Source of the DNA: Hyphochytrium catenoides
Taxonomy: Eukaryota; Protista; Hyphochytriomycota
Length of the DNA stretch: 64,000 nt
NCBI GenBank assembly: GCA_900088475.1
Contig: FLMG01000460.1
Coordinates: forward strand, 16,402-80,401
Direction of reading: 5' to 3'
Below, piece by piece: positions 9,163 through 41,782 of the stretch (position 1 is the first letter of the stretch; the number at the start of each line of letters is the position of its first letter). Both the position numbers and the translations under genes were made by a program. The notes under the pieces were generated by a model. The model saw nothing but the letters and a program-made list of their open reading frames with translations, did no database searches and was not told where the DNA came from.

Positions 9163-11406
9163 CTAGAAGTAGCGCTCCATCAGTGCTTGTGCAAGCTCGT
9201 CTCTCTCCTTGTGAGTCAAAGCTTCGAGGACGGGGCCAGCTAAGCGTCTTCTTAGCGGACCACCGCGTACTCTGGCAACGTGATCCAAAACCTTGATGGC
9301 CTCGTCCTCTTGCCCATTTTTACAGAGTACTCGGGTAAGGGAACGAAAGGTGCCTTCAAAAAGTTTCATTCCCTTTTGTTCCAGCAACTCTAGCGTCTCA
9401 TGGACCCGGTGTGGCATTCCTGCGGCTGCATAGCATCGAAGGAGCCAGGAATAGTACTGGGAGCCTAGCGTAACTCCCTCTGCATTGGCTCTCTCCCTAA
9501 GCCCCTCCGCCTCCACGACGTTCCTGTCATGATAATAGACTCTCGCTAGATAAATAAACGCCTTTTCGGTAATCACCAGCTTCGCTTTCTTCAGTGACTC
9601 AAAGACTTCTTCAGCACCGTCAACGTCATTAGCGTAAGCACAACCGGCTAACCGAGCATAAAGCCTCTGCTCCAGAGGAAAGCTGAGCACCTCCATCCGG
9701 GCCAATAGGTCCTCTGCCAGGTCTTTATGTCCTGCCGCTGTAAGATGTGTGACCAAAGAATGATAGGCGGGACCCAGCCTTGACAAACCCAAGATTTTCT
9801 CTTGTTCTGCCTCCTTGAGGAGACCAATCGCCTCATCAAACCTCCACCTTCGCGCAAGGGTACTGACTAGAGTCAGTTTCCCCTCAATGTAAACGGAGGG
9901 CAGTAATCTGCCAGCAGATGCGAGATTGTTGAAAAGATTTACAGCACTGTCTGTCATCTGAAGGTCACCCAGAGCATCAATAGTCGACCGGATCAGAGGC
10001 TGAGTGATACCGAAGCCGGCCTCCTCCATTGCCTTGAATAGGTCATAAACTTTTTGCATGTTTCCATGATAGATATGCGCTTCAATACACACTTCAAACG
10101 TCCGGCGGGAAAGGGAAAGGCCTCTATCCCTCATGAGACCTACCACCCCGTCCATTCCATCCCAATCGCCGACCTGTGCATAACCGTTCAAGAGCATATC
10201 GTACGCTTTGCTCGGGATGGCTTCTCTTGGCTCGATCTCGCTAATTAGAGTCAGAGCGGTTGCTGGATCTCCAATAAAGGAGTAAGCGTATGCCAGAACG
10301 ACTCTTTTATTCGCCTCTCGTGCCTCCACTTCCATTTCGAACTTGCGATGAAGTTTCAAGAGCTTATGCACCTCCCCACTTTCCCTCGCTTCTGTCCGCT
10401 TTCGAAGTGCATTGTAGAAAGCTCCAAGCTTCACAAAGTCCCTATTACGGGCTGCTGGTTTGCTAGAGTCGCAGAGATACCAGCGGCTAACATATGGCGT
10501 AGCATGGTCTCTTATAGCTCGTAGTAGCTCTGTGACCAGATCATCACCAAATGAGAGAGAAGGATATCGTGCAACTGTCCACAGGAGGACCCTCGCACGC
10601 CAGATGTGTTTCCCAAAAACACTGTCGAGCGGAACATCATAGCCAAAGTACTGCACAGATTTCCGACTCCTAAGAAACTTGATCAAAACCATCCCTTCTG
10701 CTTTTAAGGCGGCCGCAACGTTCTCCTTTATATAGCAGTCAAAGGGTTCCAGTGATCTTTGCAAAGGTCGTCTGTCTAAATGCGCCAAGACCTCCATTCT
10801 GAGAACCAACTTGGAAGTAAGGAAAGTAGATTTAGCTGTTGACAGTACCATGTGGCGCAGTTTCTCCGTTGTGACGTTATCATTCTCATTAAGAAGCTTC
10901 CTCATAAGCGCAACGATGAAGGTCAACACCGCGTCATCTACTTCAGGATGCTCAGCACTAATGTGAAGCAGGTGCTCGGAGGCTAAGAGGGCGGAGGGCC
11001 CAGAGAAGAACTTCGCCATACCCGAAATAGCCGCTTTGTGATTGGACACGTGCCTCGAAATGAAGAGAGCTGTAAGCAGGGCATCCGCCTGACGTCTGTC
11101 ACCCTTATGATACAGCTCTACTATCTTAGATACGGCCTCTGTTGTATGTAGACGTCCGTTGGGCGACAGAGGTGCTGGCGTCCGCAGCCGGTGACTTGAT
11201 TGTCCTTTTGACGAGCCAGACACAAGTTGCAAGTGGTCATTAGAAGTAGCATGCAGTGGTTTCTCAACCGTCCTAAGGGTTTCAACAGAGAATGCACGCA
11301 AGAAGATCGTCCCGATATCAACAGCCCTAGGCCTACGGTGCCCGATAAGCTTTTGTGCACAGCTTCTGCCAACTTGCGTCAAGATTGGCTGAGCCAGTTT
11401 AGGCAT
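9163..11406 (-). CDS. Pentatricopeptide-repeat (PPR) protein, intronless, probably organelle-targeted
   Basis: ~750 aa ORF with ~35-aa helical repeats, e.g. AYDMLLNGYAQVGDWDGMDGVVGLMRDRGL, TFEVCIEAHIYHGNMQKVYDLFKAMEEAGF, YYSWLLRCYAAAGMPHRVHETLELLEQKGM. First ATG at 11406. Confidence 0.85.
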   Translation of the reverse strand: MPKLAQPILTQVGRSCAQKLIGHRRPRAVDIGTIFLRAFSVETLRTVEKPLHATSNDHLQLVSGSSKGQSSHRLRTPAPLSPNGRLHTTEAVSKIVELYHKGDRRQADALLTALFISRHVSNHKAAISGMAKFFSGPSALLASEHLLHISAEHPEVDDAVLTFIVALMRKLLNENDNVTTEKLRHMVLSTAKSTFLTSKLVLRMEVLAHLDRRPLQRSLEPFDCYIKENVAAALKAEGMVLIKFLRSRKSVQYFGYDVPLDSVFGKHIWRARVLLWTVARYPSLSFGDDLVTELLRAIRDHATPYVSRWYLCDSSKPAARNRDFVKLGAFYNALRKRTEARESGEVHKLLKLHRKFEMEVEAREANKRVVLAYAYSFIGDPATALTLISEIEPREAIPSKAYDMLLNGYAQVGDWDGMDGVVGLMRDRGLSLSRRTFEVCIEAHIYHGNMQKVYDLFKAMEEAGFGITQPLIRSTIDALGDLQMTDSAVNLFNNLASAGRLLPSVYIEGKLTLVSTLARRWRFDEAIGLLKEAEQEKILGLSRLGPAYHSLVTHLTAAGHKDLAEDLLARMEVLSFPLEQRLYARLAGCAYANDVDGAEEVFESLKKAKLVITEKAFIYLARVYYHDRNVVEAEGLRERANAEGVTLGSQYYSWLLRCYAAAGMPHRVHETLELLEQKGMKLFEGTFRSLTRVLCKNGQEDEAIKVLDHVARVRGGPLRRRLAGPVLEALTHKERDELAQALMERYF

Positions 11407-12557
11407 CCTATCAACCTCACCTCCCAGGCTGGACAGCACACGGTGCTGCTGCCTTACCGTTGACCCTCCAAGTGATGGCGGGAGATGCCTTCTACCTTAA
11501 TCTTAAGGTATAGAAACCTCATTCTGTGAAACTACCAGCAGTCACCGCTATCCCAGCGACCAGGTCAGCAAGTGACCTTTAGTCTGGCATCTGGGAGGTC
11601 ATCGAGGCTCAAAAATTGCGAGTCAAGAAACTTCAGAACCAATTATCATTGCCAAAGGTAGACATCACTGCCACCCAGTAGATAGCCAGTAACGACTTTC
11701 GGGCCAACAAAATGTCGTCCCTGTACTAGTAGAAAGCTGTCATACAAGAGACATGTACGTCGATGTACACTTTGTTCCATCTCTATAACCCCACACAGGC
11801 AATAATTATACCAAGTACAAGTACGTACACTCTATGATCAGGACGATTCTTCAAATACTTGCTTGAAGGTGTGTCCTACGTGAAGTAGAGCTGTATAATA
11901 ATGATGGACAGCTCAGTCAGCTCTATACCTCGTCCTTGTACAAGTACAACTTCGAGGGGTCAACTCTTTGCCACAACTAGTTTCTGAGTATGATGTTGCG
12001 GCTAAAACTGTTGTTTTGAGTCTGTCTGTCTATGGAACAGAAGGAACAAACTTGTTGCGTTGAGTGCTCAGAACTCCTCGGCTTTTATAACCTCCAAAAA
12101 ATCGTCTGGATAAACAATCTGCAGAATCCACCATGCCAGAAGGAGTGATTTTATTGCGAGAACCGCAATAGAAATCTCTAGTTCTACTATCTATTTCGTC
12201 TTCTGCTGTTCCCAATGATTTTGTCCTGGGCTCAACCTTCATGACGCCGTGATCTCACCATCCCCTCAGCTCCGTAATCCTGCTGCCTTCTTCTCTTGAT
12301 GAGGTGAAGGTAAGCCAGAGTCTTTATATCCGTTTAGGTCGGTGTCGATAGATATTTGATAAATTATAAACCTAGGGGAACTGCTCCTTCTTTTTCCTAG
12401 AAATTATCAAGTTCTCTTCCGTGACCGCAAGACGCCAGAAAGAAGGCCACAAGAGCTTACTACAGAGCTCATAATAAAATCTGTTGAAATATCAGTTTTC
12501 GGCGCCGCGGCCAGTTGATATAGAAAACTTTGACGACTACTACTTCACTTGCTAGGG

Positions 12558-35506: not shown

Positions 35507-36988
35507 ATGCAGACCACCTTCCAGCAAGTGCAGCAGCGTGTGAGCAAGCTGTGCAGGCTCCTAGGGACAGATGTACCTCTACAGGCGCCAATGCTGGGCT
35601 GCTCCACTGCTGAAATGGCGGCTAGGACTTCTCTCGCAGGTGGCCTGGGTTCCATGAACTACTCTTTTCTTCAACCAGAGGCCATGAGGGAGGCCTCCCG
35701 AGAGTTAAGTGCGGCAGTAGATCGGCTATCAGTCAGGGCACGAAGCCAGGAGGCACGGACACCATTCAACTTCAACTTCTTTGCTCATCCCAGGCCTGTA
35801 GAAGATCCGGGAAGAAGAGAGCGCATACAAGCCACTCTCTCCCGTTACTACCAGGAGATGAACATTGATCCCTCCTCCATCTCACTGGATATGCAAAACC
35901 GTACTTTTGGCCCGGATATTCTGAAGACTTTGCTTGATATCAAGCCTTCCGTGGTCAGCTTCCACTTCGGACTTCCCTCTGAAGTGGATAACGTTGTTCA
36001 TCTCCTTCAAGAGGAAGGAGTGAAAGTATTGTGCACTGCCACAACCGTGGATGAAGCGCAGTGGCTGGAGAAGAAGGGTGTTGATGTCATCATTGCCCAG
36101 GGCTATGAGGCAGGCGGCCACCGAGGCACCTTCCTGCCCAGTCAATACACCACCATGCCTGAGAGCAATATTGGCACAATGGCTCTAGTCTCACAGATTG
36201 TTGACGCTGTGAGTGTGCCTGTCATTGCCGCCGGAGGTATCGTGGATGGTCGAGGAATAGCAGCCGCCTTAATGCTGGGTGCTTCAGGTATTTCCCGTGC
36301 ATTCGATGTTATGCTTTGGCTTTAGTGCCGCCTTAGAAGCCGTTGCCTTTAGGGCTTGTTATCTCCACCACACTGCTCACCCCAGTCACCCGTCCTCCTG
36401 TGCTATACATCCGCTCAGCCTCTAAGTGTATATCACATATTGTGTTTCATCAAGAAGACGTGCTCATCTTATCAAGAAGTTCACATCCTAAATATGGTTG
36501 TCTCTCTCCCTTCTCCTCTGCTGGAGGCGCTCACACTAACTCCATACAACGTGCGACTGTGTCCTATAGGTGTACAGCTAGGCACCGCTTTTATGACGTG
36601 CAAGGAAGCACTCACCAATCCCGTCCATCGTAAAGCCTTAAAAGAAGCTCAGCACCGCTATCGACCGACAGCACTTAGCCAAGCTTTCTCCGGTAGGCCA
36701 GCGCGTGGGATAGTCAACCGGTACATGGAAGAGACTCAAGACATGAAGATCCCGTACACAGATTTCCCCCTCTGGAATGCCTTTACTAATCCACTTAGAT
36801 CTCGAAGCGCGAAAAACGGGTCAGAAGATTTTCTCTCCATGTGGTGCGGGCAGAGCCCTCCTCCTCTCAGTTATTCGGAAAAGGGTGCAGATGAGGTACT
36901 CCAGCAGCTCCTGGCGGGGTTTGAGGAGATAATACCTAGGAACCTCGTAGACCTCAGGCTTAGTAGACAGGAGTCTGATTCGCTTTAG
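35507..36988 (+). CDS. Nitronate monooxygenase (2-nitropropane dioxygenase family, FMN TIM barrel), 2 exons
   Basis: LQAPMLG, VVSFHFGLP, IIAQGYEAGGHRGTF, VPVIAAGGIVDGRGIAAALMLGASG|VQLGTAF, AFSGRPARGIVNR, SMWCGQ. One phase-1 intron at about 36288-36569. Confidence 0.92.
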
Positions 36989-37388
36989 GGGAGTGAGTTT
37001 TCATTATGACCCCACCATACACGAGACTTTGTCACGAACAGGTCAACGGAGAGCCAGGAGGTCTCACAGCGAAGCGAGTTAAGCACGCCGGATGAGCGCT
37101 GTGATACATTTGTCTGATAGTGCGACCCTTCTGGAAGTTCCTTACATCCATGTTCTCCTAATGCTCCCAGAGAGAGAGATGTTAGTTATGCTAAAGCATC
37201 TCCTTCTCTTCTTTATCAATCCAGTCCCTGTCCTAATAAACTATGATGGTTGGTTCCAGGTAGCTTAGCACCGCCTCGATTGGACCGCGTATTATTGCAA
37301 CTTGATTATAGTTGGGATAGCGAGCGAGCTTGTTGAGGAGTAGGGTTGCTGGCACTTATGGCCTCTCTCGGGCCCTAAGCGCCATAGC

Positions 37389-40300
37389 TTAAAGAGACTC
37401 CATGGCGGTAAGAGCCACTTGCTCTTCCGATGTTGCGGTCTCTCTTTCCTCTCTCCTTGCTTCTGAGCGCCTTGCCTTTATTCTTTGAGCTTGAAACTTA
37501 GTCAGCCAATAGGCGCTGGTGATGCCAAATATAAAGAGAATCTGTCCTGCGAACAAGAAGAAGCTCCCTATGAGAGTGACTTGACCAGGCATGTTGGCCC
37601 ATTCGTTGCAAAACGTGCTGAACTCGGCTCCACATCTGATGATCTTCTCTCCCAAAAGAGAGAAGTCGACACACATCCCATCAAACTTCTGCGCCATCTC
37701 CGAACACCCAGCGACAAATGCAAAATGCATTCCTGCAATGGGAGGCGGGGAGCGGAGTCACCAGACAAGAACAGGAATAAAAGGACGATAGCACATGAGC
37801 CAGAACCGAACGCTAACAACCTTAGAGCCTACATCCTTGGAAAGCAATATAACAGAGAGGTGGATAGTTGCTCTAGGCCGAAACGCAAAACATGATAGAG
37901 AGAGAGGAACTTCAAAATTGAAAGTAATCCCTTAAGCACCTCGCAAAGTAAATACCGCCGCGCAATAGAGCATGATAATGTTGACATTGAAGATTAATGC
38001 TCCGAGAACCTGGCAGCAAGAATGCAGTTAGTATGAATCCTGAACCCGCCCGCTCCGAGTGCAAACGGTGCCTGATTGACTCATCGCTAACATGTTCCCG
38101 ATCGATTATGACGTCTTACCACTGCGAGGACTGGAGTTCCCCAGTGGACTAAGAATTTCGAGTACCCCTTCGTCTCGTGTCTTATTAGTGCTCTATGGGC
38201 CAAAAACCTGATCCTAAAAGCAGCTACGAGTGCGACTCCGTTGATAATCAGGGCAGTCCATCCCACACACGAAACGATGGTCTTGGTGGTGGACCAGTCA
38301 ATGATGGTTAAATACTTCTCCAGAAGTGGAAAAAGGCGTCCGGCACCGTGACGCAAGGACAGAACTCCTGAAATAGGCAAGTGACTTAGACTGGAGCAAC
38401 GACGTAGGGCCAAGATATATCAAGGGCCATTGGACAACAGTAACAAGCAAAGCTTAGTGCTTGCAGAATAGAGACCTCAAAATGATGCGCTCCAGTAACC
38501 AGAAGCGCAAGGAAAGCCAATTTGTAGGGTTGAGGAATTACATCGCTGGAGACAAAACAAGAACTGGGAAACAACTAGATTGACGGACCTCCAACCGTGC
38601 AGGCGAAAGCCAGCAGAGACCAATATGGTAAAACAGCCACAAGACGTAGGAAGCGGCTGGATGGCTGGTCAACATAGCTACAGATGGTGGTAAGCAAAAT
38701 CCTAGCCATCCGCTACCAGTGATACTGACCGGGAGGCCTGACAACTCCAGAACAAAGGAAGCGAGGGAGGACTACACAGAGCATCGACACTACCTTTGGT
38801 ACATCTGCCTTGACCAGGAATACTTGCAGGGATTAGCGGCATAGTTCATCACCAGCAAGGACGAGACCACAGATATCCCAATAAACACACCGAAAGTGAC
38901 AAGCATATTGCCCGCGTGATGCTTCACGGACACCTAGCCAATTGTCAGGGATGCAGTCAGGTTAGAGCAAGTATGAGAACTGTCTCGAGATTTCATGTGG
39001 CTAGACAGCAACGAGCAGGTTAAGACGGATTAAGATCAAGAAACTGGGAAATGCTTAAAGACCAGGAGCCATGATGGCAGGGGACTGAAAATAAAGGTGA
39101 GCTTTCTACCGGAGTTCTTCTCGTCAAGTCTATTTGAGACAAGGAAGGGCAAGCTATATCCCCAGGGATAAATAGACTGCCGGTTCCCGCCAATTTGTGC
39201 ACCGGAGCATCTATTGGCCGTACCCATTGGCGGAACGTCTCCTTCGTCATAGGCCCTAGAGAACATAAGAAACACCACATGTACAGTTAAACGGAAGGGT
39301 GTTGGAAAGTAGGAAAAAGGGAAGAAGACGCTACCTTCAGGACCAATGGGTTTGTGAAGCGTGGTAGCGATGTGTCCCCGCCCAAACCATGGCCTCGCGA
39401 TGTCACCCTCTACTCCTAATAACTCCTTAAGACGAAGAAAATATGTATTTCCCGTCTTGCATGTGCCAAGAGATGTTTCTACGAGACACGGGAACTGTTG
39501 GTAGCTCTAACTCAAGCTTGTCCCAATACCCATGATGTCATGTCCCTATCAAGTTTGAACAGTGATGCCTTCTCTGAACCCATTCTGCTATGTCGCGGAT
39601 CTCGCGTTCAAGCATCCTGATAAGGTGCCCCCTATCTGCTCCATCCATAAATCTCCCTCTCCACCTTCACTAGAGCATCGCAATCCCTTGCTAACGGACT
39701 TACGGCGGTTCCTGAAGCAAGATGGTGACATCACGCTATTGGAAACTTCGGACGAGTTGCCCCAGCGACCAGGAAATATCGCCCAGAGGTCTTCGGAGTC
39801 CTTTGTTATCTGTTCTGGCTCTGGAATGAGCCTGAGGTTCGATCCTGTATACCGCCAGACCTTAAATAAAAAGACACCGTTGTTAATATACAAACCCGTG
39901 CGCGAGCAGCTAATGGCGTAAAAGTTCGAACAAAGCTCGATGGCTTCACCTTGCTAGGGTGGGGTATAGTCCGGTCCACCAAGTATAGGCCCAAGACATC
40001 GGCCACCAAAGGAACTCGCAGCGCAGTAAAGACCATATTCTCTAGGCAATGGTATGGAATTTTAGATTGTTCTGTTCTGACGGCAACTTTGGTACTGGCA
40101 TTCCAGAATCTCTGACCACCACTCGCTCCATCGGTCGGTTGCAAAACCTGCTACTTTGCTTGATATAGCTCTCTCCTATTTACTCGAATCCTACCTGCCG
40201 GTTGAAAGTATGTAGCGTGCGAGAAGAGGCCGACAAAGCCCTCAGGATGAGTGCCATTGACTAAGCTGCAGAGCCCTCTTGTGCAGTCTCTCACTTCGCT

Positions 40301-41782
40301 CCAATCGTGCTGAAAGAACTGCAATGCTAGTACCTCTCTGGACCTGGGGCATACCTAAAAGAGAGGCGATTTAGACTATAGAAAGGACTTTGCGACAACA
40401 ACTCTTTTTCTTGCTATCTTTGTTGCTTTATCGCTCCCAACCAGATTTCAGTATAGATGTTCTCTCTGATATGACGAAGTCGTCCATCAACAAGGTTCAC
40501 ATCATTGAATCTTAATGTGCGGCAGTGTCAATAACATAACCGGGAGCCTCTCAATCTGCATTTCTTTCGTCCCTCGGGTTTGAGCTTGTCCCCATCCGTG
40601 TTCCGGACTCACCTTCATTCCCTCTTACCTTGACAGAAATTCTTTCCCAGTCGCCCTCATGGACTCCCATGTCGCACAAGACATATTCTACCGACTCCAT
40701 AGTCCCATTCTTCCGCGTAACGAGCCATTGGTTGGAACAGCCATTGTAAGCGTAGAAGAGGTAGAAGTTATAGACCCAACTCCCGTCTGTTCCATCGCTA
40801 AAGACATTGTAATAAATAGGTGCAAGGGAGACGTTGTTCTTGTCGAAGCCTCTTCCCCGTCGCAGGCTGAAGAAAAGAAAGTGAACACGAGCTCTCATTC
40901 ACGTCAAATGCAAAGACTCTGAAAAGCACCAGGCATAGCGATGGTACTTTGAAGAAGTGGTGGAGAGTACAAGTGAATGAAAGAGCCAGACAAGCTCTTA
41001 CCGCTCGTCAGTCTTGGGGAATGACAGATAGTACTTGTGCGCTTGAGGGATATTCTTTGGATCACGAGAGATTCGCCTGGCATAACCCATTCACAGAGGT
41101 AGAAAGAGAGAGACAGGTGACACAAGTGCAAAACATGCAGGGCATAAAGAGCTGCAGAATCACATAAGAGCGAGAGATCGAAAAGCTTAGAGGAAGAAAG
41201 AACGAGACTCAAACAGCGCTTTACGAAGAGACAGGGAGAGGAAAAGATATTGGAAGATAGGAGCTAGGAGAGGGAGACGGAGACGGAACGAGGGCGACAA
41301 GGCGAAAAGAGGCTGGATGATCCTAGGTGTAAGGCCGCCGCATACCAGAGGTTCTCAGCATTTGCAGGCCCGAACCGTTCTCCAGGTAGTCCCGGAAAGG
41401 TCTTGACAAAAGGTCAGTCCAAGTCGCTTTGAAGGACACCGTGATCGCCTACACTTACCCTAAAGTATAAATCTGCTTTCTTAGCATAGCTCCTCGGGTC
41501 TGCCAGATAGTAGCGCTCCAAGGAATGGAAATGTAAGACCGGAGTGTACTTAGGTGCCAACCGATGTGCCACTTCCAAGCTCTCCTCTGTACGACAATGT
41601 GGTGCTTCACTCCTATCTGCTAAAGCTTCATACTTTAGAGGAACAGCGCATTTGGCACCAGAGGTGGAAGAGCCACGGCGCTGCGGTGCGGCGGTTGCTG
41701 TACAAGCAAGGACTACTAACAGATACAGACTAACTAGGGTCCGCCAACCAGATATCAGCCTCAATGGGTAAGAGCAGCGCAT
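37389..41782 (-). CDS. Signal peptide + Vps62-like domain + TM + proteolipid/M6-like four-TM domain, multi-exon
   Basis: Vps62-like motifs KYTPVLHFHSLERY, FYLFYAYNG, GVHEGDWERISV, QH, FSHATY, FPGRWG, GPEGP. The exons join in phase to five hydrophobic segments ending at stop 37389. Confidence 0.8.

Follow-up and report, generated by a model that had tools for sequence, protein, structure and literature searches.

A 64,000-nucleotide stretch of the Hyphochytrium catenoides genome (assembly GCA_900088475.1, contig FLMG01000460.1, positions 16,402 to 80,401; hereafter the window) carries on its minus strand, from position 41782 down to 37389, one predicted gene of 13 exons encoding a protein of ~712 residues. 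The explanation that we favor, and consider probable as a whole, is that this is a single gene that joins a Vps62-type ectodomain to a four-transmembrane (tetraspan) module distantly homologous to the animal PLP/DM20/M6 proteins (Pfam family Myelin_PLP, PF01275). Taken by itself, the distant homology of the tetraspan to the animal proteins appears likely from sequence and model comparisons, which were made on relatives of the protein rather than on the window's own protein.

Gene model and protist relatives

Relatives of the predicted protein were collected with phmmer by comparing the 113 residues of exon E4 (Table 1) with 1.84 billion representative proteins. This search returned 14 matches (P0001-P0014, E values from 1.7e-6 to 9e-4), and the annotation of these relatives is unknown or hypothetical. 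P0006, from the diatom Seminavis robusta (CAB9524295.1), is annotated as an "expressed unknown protein", P0005 derives from the transcriptome MMETSP1172, which is labelled as the red alga Timspurckia oligopyrenoides and belongs to a type of data set in which contamination is possible, and the remaining matches are from environmental or assembly contigs. The full set of 2176 six-frame fragments from the 64-kb window was scanned with a hidden Markov model (HMM) built from these 14 outside proteins only. This HMM picked out the E4 fragment (E 6.2e-24, columns 139-219) and, collinear with it, the E2 fragment (E 3.8e-6, columns 17-68), and since the next best fragment had an E value above 5, the matches of both exons are beyond chance. 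A word search with exon E4 found no match, and one that used the family alignment A2 gave 8000 candidates with none at E<=1, which were probably drawn by the low-complexity tails.

The joined gene model has GT-AG borders and consistent phases at 12 of 12 introns, and its coding sequence of 2139 nt (712 codons) contains no internal stop. It was assembled locally for this check of frame and stops; the searches used single exons, fragments of the window or the proteins of relatives. The model encodes, in this order, a predicted signal peptide, a Vps62-like ectodomain, one additional transmembrane (TM) helix and, at the 3' end, the tetraspan. When P0005 (802 aa) and P0006 (834 aa) were compared with the window by tblastn, collinear matches were obtained from 41581 down to 37494, covering the Vps62 part, the juxtamembrane motif GP.TK..F..W..PI.AP, the small-loop motif, and the Cys loop with TM4. 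The tetraspan exons E1 to E4 are each bounded by AG and GT, with phases 2, 1, 0, and 1 and the joins TVG-G-VLSL, LAV-VLG, and LR-G-MHF. A first-pass annotation of the window had described these four exons (38677-37389); the exons and the peptides that it quoted all lie on the minus strand and splice in frame at GT-AG borders, but they are the 3'-terminal part of the longer model, which begins at 41782 and has a fifth TM helix in exon E0 (38933-38794). Support for the model is weakest at the small exons V1b and V1c and at the junction of V4 with X, and the tetraspan exons are unaffected by this. Between V4 and X, the relatives have approximately 50 residues for which the model offers no counterpart. 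Three in-phase candidate donors were observed at the end of V4 (GTAAGT at 39703, GTGAAG at 39670, and GTGGAG at 39664), and an exon ending at 39671 or 39665 instead of 39704 would keep the second Cys of the relatives (C-x10/11-C-P), which may point to alternative splicing or to a mis-set border.

The assignment of the ectodomain also comes through relatives. P0006 matched the Pfam Vps62 model (PF06101) at E 4.7e-7 and 29 bits against a cut-off of 22.1 bits, the open reading frame (ORF) at locus L002 matched it at 22.4 bits, and an ORF upstream of P0003 on a 693-kb ENA contig matched Vps62 as well; the window exons, scanned singly, gave no Vps62 match. The upstream exons of the window align to the Vps62 part of P0006 at 42-49% identity. 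Exon V2 aligned with E 6e-16 against P0005 and E 2e-12 against P0006 (42-43% identity), and the P0006 segment aligned by it is the very segment of the Pfam Vps62 match. This exon reads V-H-E-G-D-W-E-R and thus has the H-x-GDWE core motif. In fungal Vps62 proteins, the corresponding motif HVGDWEH has been likened to the motif GHRHDWE of NLP proteins, where it is cation-binding (PMC13159263), and a partial Vps62 region is the target-recognition domain of an insecticidal MACPF protein (PMC8624791). An AlphaFold2 (AF2) prediction for the Vps62 ectodomain gave a predicted local distance difference test score (pLDDT) of 39 and no usable fold.

The complete layout of Vps62 part, TM helix, and tetraspan was found at the loci L002, L003, and L005, and on the short contig of P0001 (loci L001 and L004) the module was seen with no Vps62 part detected. 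P0001 and P0015, a near-identical protein of the same cluster, have a long Ser/Pro-rich tail and show complementary weak Pfam matches, to Jiraiya/TMEM221 on TM1-TM3 and to Myelin_PLP on TM3-TM4. Three motifs are family-wide: LLE.y....dW in the small loop, C-x10-C-x-D...G...C-G-x6-C..W in the large loop, and (L/I)(W/I)G.F at the start of TM4. In contrast, the "PY..SL" start of TM1 and the "SAxW"-like end of TM4, which the first-pass annotation had read as signs of the family, occur in only a few members.

The tetraspan module and the Myelin_PLP family

The four-TM layout proposed in the first pass is borne out by hydropathy, which places one TM segment in each of the exons E1, E2, E3, and E4. 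The additional helix TM0 is matched in position by a TM helix in the relatives (P0006 516-550, P0005 484-515). The inner loop and the tail are basic and the large outer loop (EC2) is acidic, with five Lys and Arg against one Asp or Glu in the inner loop and three against six in EC2. Together with the signal peptide and TM0, the positive-inside rule predicts that both ends of the module are cytosolic and that its small and large loops are outer. The window shares the four Cys of the TM3-TM4 loop, including the C-x-D already reported in the first pass, with all family members that span this loop, and all members keep its CG motif. For the P0006 module, AF2 predicted four long helices (pLDDT 78.8; predicted TM-score, pTM, 0.65) and a small hairpin whose paired strands bear the two inner Cys, an arrangement that would fit nested disulfides. 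In P0008, P0009, and P0002, two or three successive Cys adjoin TM helices on what is predicted to be the cytosolic face (for instance, CCC or CC before TM3 and CC after TM0); they may be sites of palmitoylation, placed unlike the N-terminal Cys pair of animal PLP/M6.

This organization resembles that of PLP, DM20, M6a, M6b, and Drosophila M6, which likewise have four TM helices, a cytosolic N-terminal side of TM1 and C-terminal tail, a small outer loop, and a large outer loop whose four Cys are conserved and end in the pattern C-G-x6-C. M6a has four TM helices with cytosolic ends and the outer loops EC1 (44-84) and EC2 (149-213) (PMC7396582, PMC3438117), and the four Cys of its EC2 (C162/174/192/202) are essential for function (PMC3438117). 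The steps between successive loop Cys are 11/13/8 in the window family compared to 12/18/10 in M6a, the loop being shorter here (PMC3438117). Unlike the free-standing PLP/M6 proteins, the module comes after a predicted signal peptide, the Vps62-type ectodomain, and one more TM helix.

Embeddings, model shapes, and HMMs each favored PF01275. An ESM-Atlas feature search with P0006:555-834 placed PF01275 clusters in the first three ranks and in 18 of the first 30, at scores of 0.92 with 198-204 of 256 features shared and with Chordata and Nematoda as neighbor taxa. The same clusters were obtained with P0001:1-240 (0.91-0.93, 197-208 of 256 features, PF01275 again in 18 of 30), which is ~19% identical to the module of the diatom protein, and PF01275 stood alone among the Atlas neighbors above the display threshold. 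The Atlas model of P0001 superimposed on an arthropod cluster, 94% of which carries PF01275, with template modeling scores (TM-scores) of 0.69/0.64 over 200 residues, whereas all other rows were at <=0.26. In Pfam, P0001 matched PF01275 at E 0.021 and 15.0 bits, with residues 114-215 aligned to profile positions 114-227 of 231 and thus in register with TM3, the loop, and TM4, below the gathering cut-off of 23.8 bits. Approximately 57 sequences were scanned against 24,736 Pfam models, and the handful of matches at E<0.05 among them is about what chance would give; however, PF01275 had been named beforehand by the first-pass annotation, and because it is a single pre-named model out of 24,736, its match to P0001 is unlikely to be due to chance. 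The vertebrate PLP loop also reads ...SLC.D...YG...CG-x6-C, a resemblance that is a lead and not a test.

Several results weigh against homology to PLP/M6. The window exons, scanned singly against Pfam, had no match at E<=10, and no sequence of the family reached the PF01275 cut-off, the 15.0 bits of P0001 being the best. Beyond P0001 and P0015, no scanned protein or module piece matched PF01275 at E<=10, and extra scans of 19 module pieces and 10 further family proteins added none. The match was lost when P0001 was cut to residues 1-240, and residues 3-136 of this protein also matched the Jiraiya family (PF15038) at E 0.0086. The Atlas evidence comes from relatives, from parts of proteins (which lie outside the calibration of the tool), and from one family of methods, and by the tool's own caveat shuffled proteins reach a score of 0.9 in 4-10% of cases. 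An Atlas shape search with the AF2 model of the P0006 module returned no PF01275 cluster, only unrelated rows with query TM-scores of <=0.40. In Foldseek and wide VIA-align searches of the PDB with the same model, only generic helical bundles and no PLP/M6 entry were found, at levels below the stated background for such folds, and a tetraspanin or Tweety identity was likewise unsupported by these shape searches. A comparison of the family profile with PDB sequences gave no chain at E<=10; the PDB appears to be without a PLP/M6 structure, and since its matches are generic bundles only, solved structures cannot decide the PLP/M6 question. The N-terminal Cys pair of the PLP family, with two cytosolic Cys in all known members (PMC3438117), is absent: the TM0-TM1 linker encoded by the window contains only one Cys, and the family alignment has no conserved Cys pair before TM1. 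Any function of the module would be drawn wholly from analogy. The first-pass proposal of a non-animal PLP/M6 member is thus partly supported by the Atlas features, the TM-score of 0.69, the in-register Pfam match, and the topology and loop Cys seen on relatives, and it lacks a Pfam match above the cut-off or any match of the window exons themselves.

These results can be read in other ways. The module could represent a lineage-specific protist four-TM family that shares no ancestry with PLP/M6, its four helices, four-Cys loop, and CG motif being a convergence to which embeddings and coarse shapes respond. Such convergence would be compatible with an HMM match that is weak and confined to one protein, with the 4-10% of shuffled proteins and the uncalibrated protein parts in the Atlas, with the missing PF01275 cluster in the shape search that used the better AF2 model, and with the generic nature of four-helix bundles. 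It agrees poorly with the finding that two members with only ~19% identity both give PF01275 as 18 of the 30 nearest clusters with ~200 of 256 features, with the isolation of the structural match to the M6 cluster, and with a weak Pfam match that is in register and falls on the family named beforehand, and we regard it as rather unlikely. Membership of the module in another tetraspan family, be it tetraspanin, MARVEL, MS4A/CD20, Jiraiya/TMEM221, or Tweety, is highly improbable. The Jiraiya match of P0001 speaks for it, whereas no member matches tetraspanin, MARVEL, CD20, claudin, or Tweety in Pfam even at E<=10, the CCG motif is missing, and PF01275 is the only family among the Atlas neighbors above the display threshold.

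A further alternative concerns the gene model. The locus could consist of two genes, an upstream Vps62 gene and a separate five-TM gene starting from the ATG at 38906, with the collinearity to the fused relatives being only historical. An in-frame ATG does open the TM0 exon, the contig of P0001 shows the module with no recognizable Vps62 part, and the step from V4 to X, with its ~50 missing residues, is the least certain of the model. On the other side, an AG acceptor stands directly before the open frame at 38933 with a phase that fits exon X, and the juxtamembrane motif found ahead of TM0 in P0006 is encoded by exon X. The fused form occurs as a single transcriptome mRNA (P0005) and as an annotated expressed protein of Seminavis (P0006), and a five-TM protein that starts at TM0 without a signal peptide would have the topology of its Cys loop inverted. 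We consider two genes quite unlikely, and retain the single 13-exon gene with a fused Vps62 ectodomain and a PLP/M6-like tetraspan.

Exon coordinates and neighboring genes

Table 1. Exons of the predicted Vps62-tetraspan gene in window coordinates
Exon	Coordinates	Strand	Features and basis of placement
V1	41459..41782	-	ATG at 41782; hydrophobic, signal-peptide-like N-terminus; predicted start of Vps62-like ectodomain; tblastn with P0005/P0006 at 41581-41450
V1b	41346..41401	-	56 nt; borders are AG/GT and in phase; position set only by frame and family pattern
V1c	41002..41076	-	75 nt; AG/GT borders and phase fit
V2	40629..40866	-	Vps62-like core with H-E-G-D-W-E motif; two N-x-S/T sequons; placed by tblastn
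V3	40195..40354	-	Vps62-like domain continues; tblastn with P0006 residues 269-319 (49% identity, E 1.4e-9)
V3b	39950..40041	-	tblastn with P0005 residues 297-330; borders and phase fit
V4	39704..39860	-	W..F.G.WG motif; tblastn with P0002/P0005/P0021; 3' border uncertain
X	39110..39255	-	Juxtamembrane GP.TK..F..W..PI.AP, common to P0006; tblastn with P0006 residues 463-528; phase fits
E0	38794..38933	-	Additional helix TM0 and basic linker; internal in-frame ATG at 38906
E1	38589..38677	-	TM1 of the tetraspan ("PY" exon of the first-pass annotation)
E2	38120..38367	-	Small outer loop with LLE.y....dW, TM2, basic inner loop
E3	37940..38009	-	TM3
E4	37389..37732	-	Large outer loop C-x10-C-x-D...G...C-G-x6-C..W, TM4, charged tail, stop codon

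Long pyrimidine-rich (CT) tracts were observed in introns of the gene, at 41340-41090 and 37960-37740 on the minus strand. A nitronate monooxygenase gene (35507-36990, plus strand; Pfam NMO, E 8e-44) is convergent with the Vps62-tetraspan gene, and the stop codons of the two genes are ~400 bp apart. The best named relative of the nitronate monooxygenase is from Plasmodiophora brassicae (51%), followed by many alphaproteobacterial proteins at ~50%, and because of these relatives a bacterial origin of the gene is possible. A long single-exon ORF at 9166-11439 on the minus strand encodes a predicted pentatricopeptide-repeat protein (PPR, E 3e-20).

Proposed arrangement of the protein and its meaning for the PLP/M6 family

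In the arrangement that we propose, the signal peptide would place the Vps62 domain outside, in a lumen or at the cell surface, and an extracytosolic position of this domain fits the four N-x-S/T sequons in its exons. The single helix TM0 would bring the chain back to the cytosol, and the tetraspan would follow in PLP/M6 orientation: a short outer loop would connect TM1 to TM2, a basic inner loop TM2 to TM3, and the Cys loop TM3 to TM4, with a charged tail in the cytosol. The Cys loop would then face the same compartment as the Vps62 domain, to which the tetraspan is covalently joined. Two nested disulfides may hold the large outer loop, C2-C3 on the beta hairpin and C1-C4 outside it. By analogy with animal M6/PLP and with pairs of tetraspanins and their partners (PMC7396582), the tetraspan might serve as a folding and trafficking anchor, control export, and organize the membrane laterally, and the Vps62 domain might be the ligand- or lipid-recognizing part; overall, a tetraspan and its "partner" would be fused in one chain. 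The likeness to a tetraspanin with a single-pass partner lies in a four-TM organizer whose large disulfide-bonded outer loop stands beside the ectodomain of the partner, and the M6 literature itself draws a structural parallel to tetraspanins (PMC7396582). Unlike in tetraspanins (PF00335), the partner ectodomain is fused here and the motif is CG rather than CCG; no member matches PF00335, and PDB matches to PRPH2 were at background.

PLP/M6 had been described in the first-pass annotation as mainly animal proteins, in agreement with the literature: PF01275 was listed as a novel metazoan cluster in one survey (PMC5620054), and the M6 family is conserved from arthropods to mammals (PMC3095610, PMC3438117). 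The occurrence of the present family in a diatom, in a transcriptome labelled as a red alga, and on environmental contigs contrasts with this animal-only distribution (PMC5620054, PMC3095610). In the literature searched, the coverage of which was incomplete, there was no description of this protist family or of a fusion of Vps62 to a tetraspanning anchor. A pre-metazoan origin is one reading of the distribution, beside gene transfer or convergence. It is possible, although we advance this only tentatively, that the PLP/M6 tetraspan predates animals, that protists of several lineages use it as a built-in membrane anchor and organizer for an extracellular Vps62/NLP-like recognition domain, and that animals kept only the free tetraspan.

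If this is true, the "myelin proteolipid" fold originated in a unicellular, non-neural setting, and an ancestral job of it may have been pairing with an ectodomain partner, which would be testable in diatoms. PLP, DM20, and the M6 glycoproteins have been studied almost only as nervous-system proteins, and a conserved protist family would widen the range of PLP/M6 and supply an outgroup by which ancestral features such as the four loop Cys could be told from animal additions such as the N-terminal Cys pair and the longer loop. The fusion to Vps62 would hint at the type of partner that such tetraspans have, and "unknown" proteins of diatoms and other protists would gain an annotation.

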